Positions 15,642-19,768 of a stretch of 64,000 bases of DNA are shown here, piece after piece (position 1 is the first letter of the stretch; each line of letters opens with the position of its first letter). The stretch covers positions 3,286,001-3,350,000 of the forward strand of contig OZ251225.1 of assembly GCA_965240325.2 (NCBI GenBank). Reading direction: 5' to 3'. Made by a program: the position numbers and the translations under genes. Source of the stretch: Rebecca billardiae RCC1528 (lineage: Eukaryota > Protista > Haptophyta). A model generated the notes under the pieces. The model was not told the DNA's origin. It saw only the letters and a list, made by a program, of their open reading frames with translations, and made no database searches.

Positions 15642-16404
15642 ATGCTCGCCATCTCCTCGCTCGCGACCCTCGGCTTCAGCGGCGTGCACGCGCCCGCCCG
15701 CGCCACCGTGCCATCTTCCGTCTCTGTGCGCATGGAGGACGTGGCCACCCCGCCGCCCGAGCCCGAGAACCGCATGTCGAAGGCGCTGCCGTTCGCACAG
15801 GCGCCCGCGCTCCTCGATGGCGCGATGGCCGGCGACAACGGTGCGCGAGCCGCGCGCACGCGCGCACCAACGCGAGCGTGGCACGCGCGCGCGCTCGCCG
15901 TCACTCACGTTCACGCTCACGCCCATGCCGCGCACAGGCTTCGACCCGCTCAACCTGGCGGAGAGCAAGTCGCGCCTCGACTTCTACCGCGAGGCGGAGA
16001 TCCGGCACTGCCGGCTCGCGATGCTGGCGGCCGCGAACTGGCCGCTGGCGGAGCTGCTGAACAAGCCGATCGCGAACGTGCTGAACCTGCCGGCGATCAC
16101 GGACGTGACGGGCGGGCGTGCGCCATCGGTCCTGAACGGCGGCCTCGGCCAGGTGAGCGCGGTCTTCTGGCTGCTCGTGGTGGGCATTGCGGTGTTTGCG
16201 GAGGTGGGCGAGATCAACCCGCTCGCGCCGGAGCAGAAGATCGCCGGCGACCTTGGCTTCGACCCGCTGGGTCTGTGGGGCAAGATGGACGCGCGCGGCA
16301 GGCGCGAGATGCAGGACAAGGAGCTGGCAAACGGCCGGCTCGCGATGGTCGCCATCACCGCCTTCGTGGCGGAGGAGTTCATCGGCAAGTCCGCCGTCTT
16401 CTGA
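15642..16404 (+). CDS. Lhcz-like LHC protein, copy 3 (intron 15841-15937)
   Basis: Near-identical inverted copy, head-to-head with copy 2. Confidence 0.92.
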
Positions 16405-16590
16405 GCTGGGACTGAATAATTGATACAGTAAAGTCATCTGTCACAATCTGGCTTCCTCAGTGCCGATGCCACTATAGCACTAGTACATGTTACTAATAAC
16501 GGATAGTTGTACTAACGGAGAGTGCGACCGCTTGTAACCCCCACCCTACCGCGCGCTCACCCGCCGGCCGCCTGCGTTCGGAGCCTGAAC

Positions 16591-19500
16591 TTAGCGGTCC
16601 TCCGGTGACGATGAAGCGGGCGTGGCCACGGCCCGCGAGCACACGAACGGCAGCGGTTGAGCGCACTGCCACCACGCGCCGAGTCCTCCGCCGATCAGGT
16701 GAGCGCACTGCTCCTGCCGCCGCAGCAACGAGCCAGCGTCCATCCAGCTCCGCTGCCACGCCGCACGCCCGGGCGTCGGGACGCGCGCGCGCGCAGCGCC
16801 GTCGCGCCAGCGCCAGCCCACCTCCACCCGCCGCCCCGCCCCAGCCGAGAGCCAGCGCGGCACCCAGCTCCGATCGCGCGGCGTGCGCACGAGGCCGACC
16901 CACGCTGCGGCCGAGACGCCGTCAAGCAGGCAGAGCGCGGCGCGCAGCGCGTCCGGCCCGGGCAGGACGGCGAGGGCGGCGCCCATCGCCGCGCACGCCT
17001 CCGCCGCGCGCGCCGCGGGCCGCGGGCGCGGCTCGAGGCGCAGCTCGAGCTCGCCCGCGCGCACCCAGCGCCCGGCGCCCGCCTGCCCCCGGGCCTCGCA
17101 CGCCGCGCACTCGGCGCGCGCGCGCGCGCTCGCGTGCGCCCAGAGGGCCAGCGCGAGGCTCAAATACGCCAGCACGACGAGCAGGCTGCCCAGCACCGCG
17201 CGGTTGCACAGCAGCCGCTGCAGCCGGCCGAGCGCGCTCGTCTTGAACTGCTGGCTCCTCGTGCGCGTGTACTCGCGCGGGCGCCGAGGCGGCCTTTGGC
17301 TCGGCTCGGAGAACGTGACGGCGCCGCCGTGCGCACCTGCGGCTGCGCGCGCGCCTGCCGTCGTGTGCGAGGGTCCGGCGCCCAAGCCGTGTCCGGAGCG
17401 CAAGCTTGGCTTTCTGGGCGGCTCGGCATCCGCGCCGCCGCCGTCCCCGCTGCCGCCGCCGTCCCCAGGATCTGCGCCGAGCACAAGCCTGCTCACGTGC
17501 CGGCTGAACTCCAGGGCGCCCCCCGTCGCGTCCACGACCGCCATCAGCCGCGAGTAGTCTGCCGCACTCGTCGCCTTGCACGCGCGCACATCGAAGGGCG
17601 GGGCGCGCGGCCGCCGGCCTTTCGCGCCGTCGGCGTGCGCGCCGTCCTCCGGCGCGCCGATGTGTCGGACCTCCACCTCAATGCCGCGAAGGTGTGTGAA
17701 CGTGAAGAGCTCCACCACACACCAGAGCCTGCGCAGGCGCCGGGTGAGGAGCGGGGCGCGCCGCGGCCGAGTGTGCCGCCGCGGACGCCGGCGGGGGCGA
17801 GGCGGGCGCGCGCAGAGTGAGGGGCGGGGGCCGCCCCCCGCACCCACCGCCTCCCCCGCGCCCCCGCCCAGCCCGCGCGCGTGCGCCGCGCGTGCGCCGC
17901 GCGTGCGCCGCGCGTGCGCCGCGCCAGCCGCACACACCTGTCGAGGTAGGTCGCCCCCTTGAGAACCACCAGGCTGGAGCAGCCCGCGAGATACAGCGGC
18001 AGATTGGGCAGGTCGCGGCCGATGTCGGCCTGGTCGATGCTGCGGGCGCGCCGCCGCGCGCCGCGCGCGGGGTGGGTGGTGTGGCGCGGCGTGTGCGGCC
18101 GTGCGGCGTGCGCGGGGCTGCTGCCGGGCCGCGGTGCCGCGGAGCCGAGCGGTGCGCTGGCCACCGCCGGTGCAGTCGCTCTACATGCGCTGCTGGGTGC
18201 GAGAGGCGGAGCCAGCGGCAAGAGCGCAGGGCCGGCCTGCCGCCTAGCTCTGCGCAATCGCGCGCCCGGCCGAGGCGCGGCGCTCACGAGCGTCGTGCGC
18301 ACGCACGCCCCCTGAACGGCGCCGCCCGCTCCGCCGCGCGCCGCGCCGGCCGCCCCGCGCGCACCAGCAGCGGTCGAGCCAAACTACCGGCTCGCGGCCG
18401 TTGTGCGTGTCTCTAAAGTCGTGCCGCCAGCCCTCGAAGGCGGCCCACTTGAGCGCCGGGTCGTCGTGCCAGCTGGGGTGGGCGCGGGGCGCGGAGGCGC
18501 GGCGCGCGCGCAGCGAGCGCCTTGCAGCGCGCACGCCCGCAACGTGCGACACAGCCGGGCGCACCGCGTGCGCGGCCGCGCGCGCCGCCCGCGGCCGCGC
18601 GCCGCGCGCCGCGCCGCGCGCACGAGTGGCTAATGAAAGCGTCCACGTCCGCGAGGGGCCACGGCGTGGAGAGCTGGTAGAAGCGGTTCGCCATCTCGAC
18701 GGGCGTGTCCGGCGCGTCTGGCGTGAACACCTCGACGCTGAGCAGCTCGGCCGGCACGGCGCGCATGCGCGCGGTCGCGGACGCGATGATGGCCGCCGCG
18801 CCGCCGTGCGCCGCTGGCGCAAACATGGTGGCGATGGCGGCGGCCGACGCGATGCCCTCCGTGCGCGAGGCGACGAGGGCCTGCGTGCGTCGCTGCAGCC
18901 CCGGCCACAGGTAGTTCACCAGCCCTGCGAGCTGCGCGCCCACCACCGCCGCGATCGCCGCGCTGCTCGAGCCGCCCCAGAAGCCCGGCAGGCTCGAACC
19001 GAGCAGCGCGCCGTAAGGGAGCATGCCGCACAGCAGGCCGAAGACGGCGGCGCTCGCGGTGGAGGAGTGCATGCGGCGGTGGAAGCGGCGGTTCGAGCGC
19101 GGGCCGTAGCCTCCCTTCCACAGCCCCCACACCATGCGTGGCGCGTAGTCGACCACGATGAGCAACGCACCCAGGCCAAACAGGCCACAGTACGCCGCGC
19201 GCGCGAGCGGCCATGCGCTGCGGCACGCACTCGGCGAGCTGAGCGCGTCGGCGACGATGCGCACGGCCGCGCGGATACACTGCGCGAAGATGAGCGTGTT
19301 GCCGTACGCGGCCCACAGCGAGATCGCGATGACCGGCGCCGAGTGCGTCGGCACGATCGCGTGCATGAGCAAGATGTAGTTCAGATAGTAGGCACTCATG
19401 CACCAGAAGAACGCATCGGAAGCGGCGGGCGTGACGTGCAGCGCGACGAGGCTGGGCACGCCGACGAGCACGAAGACGAACGCAAAGGGCGCCACCGCCC

Positions 19501-19768
19501 AGAGGTGCAGCCGCCAGCTGCTGCGGTGCGCCTCCTGCAGCCGGTCGCGGATCACCGTCGCGTGCGAGATCGACACGTCATCAAGCGCGTCGGAGACGTG
19601 CGCCGATGGCGAGCGCTGCGCTCGCGCCCCGGCTGGGGAGGCGCCCTCCTCGTCAAAACGCGTGTACGACGACGAGGGCCGCCGCGAGCGGCGCGCCCAT
19701 GCGGGAAGGCGTTGCCGCCGCTCGGTCTCCCCTGGCGGCGCTCGCCGTGTCCACCGCCATGTTTTCAT
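16591..19768 (-). CDS. Multi-pass membrane protein with TIR-like domain and C-terminal C-type lectin domain (830 aa; exons 19768-18624, 18472-18365, 18039-17938, 17728-16591)
   Basis: Three GT-AG introns splice in frame to DAFISHSWHDD...WLDRCCIDQ...LPLYLAGCSSLVVLKGATYLDRLWCVVELFTF; then TM (AVLGSLLVVLAYLSLALALW) and CTLD motifs (AAEAC, AWVGL, CAHL...WWQC...PFVC). Confidence 0.78.

Follow-up and report, generated by a model that had tools for sequence, protein, structure and literature searches.

The 64,000-nucleotide stretch of the haptophyte Rebecca billardiae RCC1528 that was analysed here (contig OZ251225.1 of assembly GCA_965240325.2, positions 3,286,001 to 3,350,000 of the forward strand; hereafter the window) carries on its minus strand, between positions 16591 and 19768, a gene for a putative membrane receptor, in which six hydrophobic segments, a domain predicted to have the TIR fold, a seventh transmembrane (TM) helix, TM7, and a C-type lectin-like domain (CTLD) follow one another in one polypeptide chain. 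The best explanation, to which a probability of roughly 0.55 is given, is that the gene is an intact member of a lineage-expanded haptophyte family of membrane TIR-CTLD proteins, in which the CTLD would bind a ligand, the TIR domains would be clustered and signalling through nicotinamide adenine dinucleotide (NAD+) would follow. The multi-TM, TIR, TM and CTLD architecture had already been proposed in a sequence-only reading of the window; it is present in the window gene and conserved in its relatives. The parts of the protein are located as follows:

18908..19495, minus strand: six-TM module, amino acids (aa) 92-110, 121-139, 144-162, 192-210, 238-256 and 269-287
17479..18661, minus strand: predicted TIR-fold (HET/TIR-like) domain, spread over all four exons and covered by alignment A2
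17710..17724, minus strand: W-x3-E motif opening the helix that follows strand C; Trp codon at 17724-17722, Glu codon at 17712-17710
17143..17199, minus strand: TM7, aa 177-195 of exon 4 (E4), with a hydropathy of 2.47, helical in the AlphaFold2 model and conserved in alignment A4
16636..17019, minus strand: CTLD with four canonical Cys and WVGL; Lectin_C at E4 aa 237-364

The gene structure is established from four exons, which were read and translated separately and sum to 2493 nt, that is, 830 codons and a stop codon:

18624..19768, minus strand: exon 1, 381 full codons and 2 bases, with an Arg-rich N-terminal tail, the six hydrophobic segments, a linker motif and the first TIR strand (VDAFISH)
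18473..18623, minus strand: intron 1, GT..AG, 151 nt
18365..18472, minus strand: exon 2, WHDD...WLDRC
18040..18364, minus strand: intron 2, GT..AG, 325 nt
17938..18039, minus strand: exon 3, IDQ...YLD
17729..17937, minus strand: intron 3, GT..AG, 209 nt
16591..17728, minus strand: exon 4 including the stop codon, with the remainder of the TIR-like domain, a Gly/Ala/Arg-rich linker, TM7 and the CTLD

In the open frame of exon 1, no in-frame start other than the ATG at 19768 precedes TM1, and the stop codon is the TAA at 16593-16591. All three introns have GT at the 5′ end and AG at the 3′ end. Moreover, each of the three junctions cuts a codon after its second base (tc/c for S, tg/c for C and ag/g for R), and the motifs that span them read FISH-S-WHDD, WLDRC-C-IDQ and YLD-R-LWCVVEL. 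In alignment A2, the four exon pieces of the window tile the conserved domain of about 200 aa of 14 homologs with a single unfilled column per junction; in these three columns the relatives have S, C and R as consensus, just as the split codons encode; the splice model is therefore more than chance. Together with the intron-poor paralogs described below, these observations bear out the earlier claim that three canonical introns join a frame of 830 aa.

The paralogs were sought by a six-frame search of the window's own genome (72 Mb in 41 contigs). The position of intron 1 is practically common to the paralogs L014, L015/L021, L019 and L020, with an offset of one base in L014, and introns 2 and 3 are both missing from L014, L016, L019 and L020. 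In L014 (contig C18), the counterpart of exons 2-4 is a single open frame, WHDD...WIDRACIDQ...RLWCVFEIF...TM...CTLD, and the gene layout of L019 and L020 is the same; L016 (contig C23) holds the entire protein in one open frame of 800 aa without introns, and L015/L021 have more introns than the window gene. Among the transcripts, P0007 is a complete MMETSP open reading frame (ORF) of 810 aa from a relative in the Pavlovales, with the same architecture as the window gene. In an exhaustive search of representatives, exon 1 had only two weak matches: P0001, a fragment ending in ...FLSHSWHDEPGEK that runs straight across the position of junction 1, and P0002, an unspliced read-through of a paralog from the same genome. 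A word-indexed homolog search with exon 4, within a length band of 0.55-1.75x, gave no match.

The GC content of the receptor region is 68-84%, and long ORFs overlap on both of its strands. Since long open frames come cheaply at 75-80% GC, the case for an unbroken exon 4 is made by homology: in the window gene and in five paralogs, the CTLD is in frame with the C-terminal part of the TIR-like domain. The same composition invites the suspicion that the window copy is dead (a pseudogene) or wrongly joined, its open frames being a by-product of about 78% GC, and the many overlapping ORFs, a gene model that was not drawn from RNA reads and a CTLD that has an Arg-rich insertion and lies only 1.3 bits above its cut-off would suit it. 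This is very improbable, for all the invariant residues of both domains are kept, no stop or frameshift interrupts the frame, and splicing at the canonical sites turns the split codons into the residues of the family consensus. The predicted gene model of the window copy, including its junctions, is confirmed by homology.

The middle domain is recognised by its fold rather than by sequence profiles. The Pfam cut-offs are 28 bits for TIR_2 (PF13676), 22.5 bits for HET (PF06985) and 22.6 bits for Lectin_C (PF00059). When the exons were searched separately, exons 1-3 had no Pfam match of any kind and no exon scored for TIR (PF01582), TIR_2 or HET; the window exons split the TIR-like domain, which lowers exon-wise scores. 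The relatives likewise stay below the TIR and TIR_2 cut-offs, the best TIR_2 score recorded among them being 13.8 bits (P0005) against 28. Sub-threshold matches occur among 13 relatives for TIR_2 (4/13, best E 0.0053), TIR (1/13, E 0.017) and HET (5/13); those to HET reach 12.9-17.6 bits among the relatives, with the maximum at a related locus of the same genome, span profile positions 43-66 only and sit on the W.D..CI.Q block. The window gene was not hit when the genome was scanned for the HET and TIR_2 families, and a profile of the domain searched against PDB sequences found TLR15 only, with an E of 0.92. Alignment A3 comprises nine bona fide TIR_2 domains encoded in the same genome; its hhalign match to A2 is weak, with a probability of 11.5% and a P of 0.0026, and strands A, B and C are aligned in register.

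The structural comparisons were made with an AlphaFold2 model of the homolog P0003 (residues 285-480, with A2 as the input), which has a predicted local distance difference test score (pLDDT) of 93.2 and a predicted template modelling score (pTM) of 0.89. Foldseek against the PDB returned TIR domains in all of rows 1-49 (E 1.2e-3 to 3e-2, probabilities 0.63-1.00), in the order RUN1, SNC1, RPS4, RPP1 and ROQ1 first, then ThsB, SPARTA, SARM1, MyD88 and TLR15, and the template modelling scores for plant TIRs were 0.45-0.55. With VIA-align, among 48,161 chains, ranks 1-12 were TIR domains with Z from 9.6 to 7.4, led by IL-18Rbeta (Z 9.6) and SARM1 (Z 9.4), and were followed by the related deoxyribosyltransferase/LOG folds. 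The label TIR-like is supported because the P0003 model matches solved TIR domains, though the sequence profiles do not place the domain; it is best described as a divergent HET/TIR-like variant with a predicted TIR fold. Therefore, the TIR domain of the sequence-only reading stands at the level of the fold and falls at that of sequence, and, of the two Pfam families in which matches had been expected, Lectin_C is reached by the window gene (23.9 against 22.6 bits) and TIR_2 is not.

The designation of a canonical TIR was rejected, as the Pfam TIR and TIR_2 cut-offs are not reached. Canonical TIR_2 domains do occur in the same genome, at 24 places, with up to 69.9 bits and in large open frames, separate from the divergent family. 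In addition, P0005 has at residues ~170-270, N-terminal of its six-TM module, a second three-block region (LSYGW / WDFGCLPE / RGWCVFE); since the three-block pattern is repeated, this one protein appears to hold two TIR/HET-like domains.

In the window protein, the W and E of LWCVVEL are the equivalents of W401 and E405 (P0003 numbering), which are invariant in 13 relatives (alignment A1). As in enzymatic TIRs, the Glu belongs to the helix that follows strand C and is preceded by an aromatic residue four positions away, and hhalign pairs it with the one Glu that is invariant in the A3 set; the earlier statement that a Glu occupies the catalytic TIR position is thus upheld, with a partner Trp four residues before it. 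It has been reported that W204 and E208 of AbTir, in the alpha-C helix, touch the substrate, that E208A is dead and W204A is without cyclisation, and that L6 W131A and ROQ1 W82A are inactive (bioRxiv 10.1101/2022.05.07.491051). By analogy with these residues, the TIR-like domain may have NADase activity.

A different view of the middle domain is that it is a HET-type scaffold or death domain, which would act by homotypic assembly, for example in the self/non-self recognition of cells or gametes, and would perform no NAD+ chemistry. The three blocks F.SHSW / W.D..CIDQ / R.WC..E follow the pattern of HET domains, the weak HET matches of five of the 13 relatives lie on its second block, and the roughly 119 TIR-like loci of the genome (see below) would provide many possible homotypic partners. 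HET homologs in the Haptophyceae, and a remote relation of HET and TIR through the three blocks, were described by Dyrka et al. 2014 (PMC4986451); the window family fits this description, which also speaks for the scaffold. However, a Trp and a Glu that are invariant in the catalytic helix are hard to square with a pure scaffold, the enzymatic TIRs RUN1, SARM1, SpbK and ThsB are among the best structural matches, and the HET cut-off is never reached, so that the scaffold is considered unlikely.

The C-terminal domain is real, as judged from its Lectin_C score and a model of the window's own piece. The score of the window passes the cut-off narrowly, by 1.3 bits, and those of five paralogs of the same genome are 29, 27.6, 38.8, 33.8 and 40.3 bits and that of P0003 is 55.9 bits. 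The AlphaFold2 model of window:16594-17220:- (alignment A4) has a pLDDT of 70.8 and shows a long helix for TM7, and then the usual beta-alpha-alpha-beta ... beta-beta-beta order; its long-loop region (residues 111-166) has a pLDDT < 50. With this model, Foldseek found 414 matches in the PDB at E <= 1e-3. LOX-1 is at the top (1.4e-6), langerin and NKR-P1 likewise have E of about 1e-6, and LLT1, CLEC9A and CD69 are also among the leading matches. In A4, the four canonical cysteines and the W and G of WVGL/WIGL are invariant, an extra C..C stands directly after the helix, and the Arg-rich insertion is seen in the window CTLD. The C-type lectin domain of the sequence-only reading is in this way substantiated by both score and fold.

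The same cannot be said of its glycan sensing. The EPN/QPD and WND calcium/sugar motifs were not found in the window CTLD, and the paralogs in A4 have only QPR or EPA at the sugar-motif position and are without WND. The best structural matches belong to the calcium-independent LOX-1/NKR-P1/CLEC9A group. With the motifs missing and the nearest folds in this group, glycan sensing is unsupported, for the window gene and its relatives alike, and the designation of a glycan-binding lectin was rejected on the absence of EPN and WND.

Hydropathy and charge give the probable arrangement of these domains in the membrane. The N-terminal helices that had been put at about six are confirmed as six hydrophobic segments, conserved ahead of the TIR-like domain in the 14-sequence family alignment. 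Over eight members, the sum of Lys and Arg (K+R) is 123 in the N-flank, loop 2, loop 4 and C-flank against 32 in loops 1, 3 and 5; in the window protein, the corresponding sums are 14 and 4. From the hydropathy and these positive-inside counts, an N-in protein with six passes is derived, with the TIR-like domain in the cytosol and the CTLD outside, so that the two domains would lie on opposite membrane faces, as had been supposed. The conserved Cys pattern of the CTLD is compatible with an oxidising compartment. The six-TM module has no Pfam family match and matched no other known family, including those of known transporters and channels. Between TM6 and the TIR-like domain (window ~18800-18900), the linker has the consensus RGE.VSAAAGIA, of which E, A, A and I are invariant across the six-TM + TIR-like family; the motif reads TEGIASAAAIA in the window gene.

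The family, whose existence and size are likewise established, was assembled from proteins and from the genome. L016 as the query led to P0003 (722 aa), P0004 and P0005, and the P0003 domain led to P0006-P0014. The A2 profile found 169 stretches at E <= 1e-3; as 150 of 342 candidates were scored, the counts are lower bounds, and the TIR-like domain occupies at least about 119 separate loci among the 150 stretches listed. The six-TM profile (alignment A5) matched 61 stretches, which represent 58 loci; each sits immediately upstream of a TIR-like match, on the same strand. The profile of TM7 and CTLD matched 21 loci including the helix; for 20 of them, a TIR-like match precedes on the same strand by no more than 3 kb, and 16 of these 20 CTLD-bearing TIR-like loci also have a six-TM match. 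About 20 members of the 58-gene six-TM + TIR-like family bear a CTLD, the window gene among them, and the family lies within the larger set. That the gene belongs to a multigene family had escaped the sequence-only reading.

Since most of the six-TM + TIR-like genes are without a CTLD, the core must work without it, and several sensor modules have been swapped on this core, the CTLD among them. At L027:1519-4893:+ (C7:2985508-2985960) and L023:333-5222:+ (C22), the TIR-like domain is joined to an N-terminal domain resembling inosine-uridine nucleoside hydrolase, with 45.4 and 31.5 bits, respectively, at a cut-off of 34.2. Clusters of the ESM Atlas combine the same fold with Lectin_C, HNOB and Ank in haptophytes, with TPR in oomycetes and ascomycetes and, in one cluster without recorded taxa, with DUF285. 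The language-model searches of the Atlas returned only unnamed haptophyte or perkinsozoan clusters, all < 0.9.

The identity shared by the paralogs is 24-42%. Recent repeat or transposon copies, which had been considered as their source, were rejected on this low identity. For the closest pair, L014/L019, the ratio of nonsynonymous to synonymous substitution rates (dN/dS) is ~0.45 for CTLD and TIR-like domain alike, with an unconstrained linker; as the ratio is equal in the two domains, no faster evolution of the ectodomain is seen in this one pair. Local head-to-head or tandem pairs and triplets of family members stand at C14:197699-205333, C11:494020-498075, C12:124884-133605 and C12:950018-969524, which suggests recent local duplication. 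In the CTLD matches of the paralogs L019 (C13:527323-527874) and C23:1237433-1237981, an in-frame stop was flagged once each (TAG and TGA, respectively); these stops probably lie at or beyond the gene end, and the ORF frames are intact to the end of the CTLD.

The composition of the family also bears on what the protein is for. It might not be a danger sensor at all; it could be a housekeeping protein of the surface or secretory pathway (adhesion, assembly of scales or covering, capture of prey or bacteria), or a six-TM channel or transporter under the control of the cytosolic domain, and its CTLD would bind a component of the cell itself. The six-TM + TIR-like core without a CTLD in most members, the lack of lectin motifs in the CTLD and the equal dN/dS of ~0.45 in the one pair tested agree with this, and the nucleoside-hydrolase-like and HNOB partners hint at general nucleotide or small-molecule signalling. 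On the other hand, large, divergent and locally duplicated families with swapped sensors are typical of recognition repertoires, and the six-TM module is unmatched to known transporter or channel families; a housekeeping function is accordingly held to be improbable. A more ambitious proposal is that the protein is a self-contained sensor, enzyme and effector of algal innate immunity, in which the CTLD or a swapped sensor clusters the protein, the TIR makes a signal of the cyclic ADP-ribose type and a pore or channel formed by the six helices is gated. If it held, one polypeptide would do the work of several proteins of the Thoeris or plant TIR pathways; this is regarded as distinctly unlikely.

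For the preferred reading, an intact receptor of the TIR-CTLD family, the following course of events may be envisaged. The cytosol would contain the N-terminal tail, the loops that follow TM2 and TM4, and the whole stretch from TM6 to TM7 with the TIR-fold domain, and TM7 would take the disulfide-bonded CTLD to the cell exterior or the secretory-pathway lumen. There an external ligand would be bound by the CTLD, probably without calcium, and ligand-driven clustering would bring the TIR domains together; clustering of TIR domains is the activating step of known enzymatic TIRs. The assembled domains could then cleave or cyclise NAD+, leading to a signal or to NAD+ depletion, and the six-helix module might be an anchor only or act as an effector. 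A role in immunity or recognition would fit such a receptor, and pattern recognition in particular is purely conjectural.

Several points weigh against this reading. The gene model of the window copy is backed by homology, not by transcripts, and the TIR fold was modelled on P0003, not on the spliced protein of the window, whose exons entered as rows of A2. For the domain itself, the scores for TIR, TIR_2 and HET are all below the cut-offs, the PDB profile search stopped at an E of 0.92 and the hhalign probability is 11.5%. The sugar/calcium motifs are missing, and the ligand loop of the window CTLD is modelled at pLDDT < 50. The topology is derived from hydropathy and the positive-inside rule. 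Finally, about 38 of the 58 six-TM + TIR-like loci are without a CTLD.

Compared with known systems, the window protein resembles the Toll-like and IL-1 receptors in having an extracellular sensor, a single pass between sensor and TIR, and a cytosolic TIR fold, as far as the predicted topology goes, and the TIR domains of IL-18Rbeta, IL-1RAcPb, MyD88 and TLR15 are among the structural matches of the P0003 domain. However, its sensor is a CTLD and not leucine-rich repeats (LRR) or Ig; its TIR is N-terminal of the helix and its sensor C-terminal, which is the reversed orientation; it adds the six-helix module; and its TIR sequence is far from Pfam TIR/TIR_2. No LRR match was found in the Pfam scans of the window exons and the relatives, and the protein does not qualify as a Toll-like receptor. 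The contrast with LRR-based Toll-like receptors drawn in the sequence-only reading therefore holds, in both the absence of LRR and the reversed domain order.

The animal type II C-type lectin-like receptors (the LOX-1, NKR-P1, CLEC9A, CD69 and Dectin-1 group) are alike in the predicted N-in/C-out orientation and in the CTLD placed right after the helix, and most of this group is likewise without calcium/sugar motifs. They differ in having a short cytosolic tail of the ITAM/ITIM type where the window protein has the TIR domain and six helices, and there is no evidence for common descent of the whole proteins. With the enzymatic TIRs (RUN1, L6, ROQ1 and RPP1; AbTir, ThsB and SpbK; SARM1), the predicted fold and the pair Trp-x3-Glu in the helix are shared; unlike them, the window protein is without NB-ARC/LRR, SAM/ARM or a Thoeris context, and its domain is membrane-tethered on both sides. 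The HET domain and its non-fungal homologs have in common with the family the three conserved blocks and the weak profile matches on the W.D..CI.Q block, whereas the NACHT/WD40 architecture of HET proteins is missing from the window family and its HET scores are below the cut-off.

In the literature searched, no description of a TIR + CTLD membrane protein or of a six-TM + TIR family was found. The searches were aimed at the architecture or the domain, and so the opinion that this architecture is undescribed was sustained. The database entries for family members are hypothetical or partial 'C-type lectin' proteins only. For example, the Pavlovales sp. CCMP2436 records in the 90% identity cluster of P0007 measure 337 and 350 aa, against 810 aa for the transcript P0007, and one of these records bears the name 'C-type lectin protein'; the family thus escapes current annotation.

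No immune signalling module is shared more widely across life than the TIR domain, and to our knowledge almost nothing has been learned of its use by haptophytes, which drive ocean carbon cycling and whose blooms are controlled by viruses. If the preferred reading is true, this alga would have a class of surface receptors of its own, with a lectin-like sensor, a probably catalytic TIR, an orientation opposite to that of Toll-like receptors and dozens of genes. It would also give a testable entry to the recognition of viruses, bacteria or mates by algae, and a further data point on how often receptors combining a sensor and a TIR arose independently.

As for the surroundings of the gene, a light-harvesting gene of the chlorophyll a/b-binding family (window 15817-16404, plus strand; Chloroa_b-bind, 109 bits) converges on the receptor gene. 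The stop codons of the two genes are ~190 bp apart, and a spacer of lower GC (16400-16590) lies between them.

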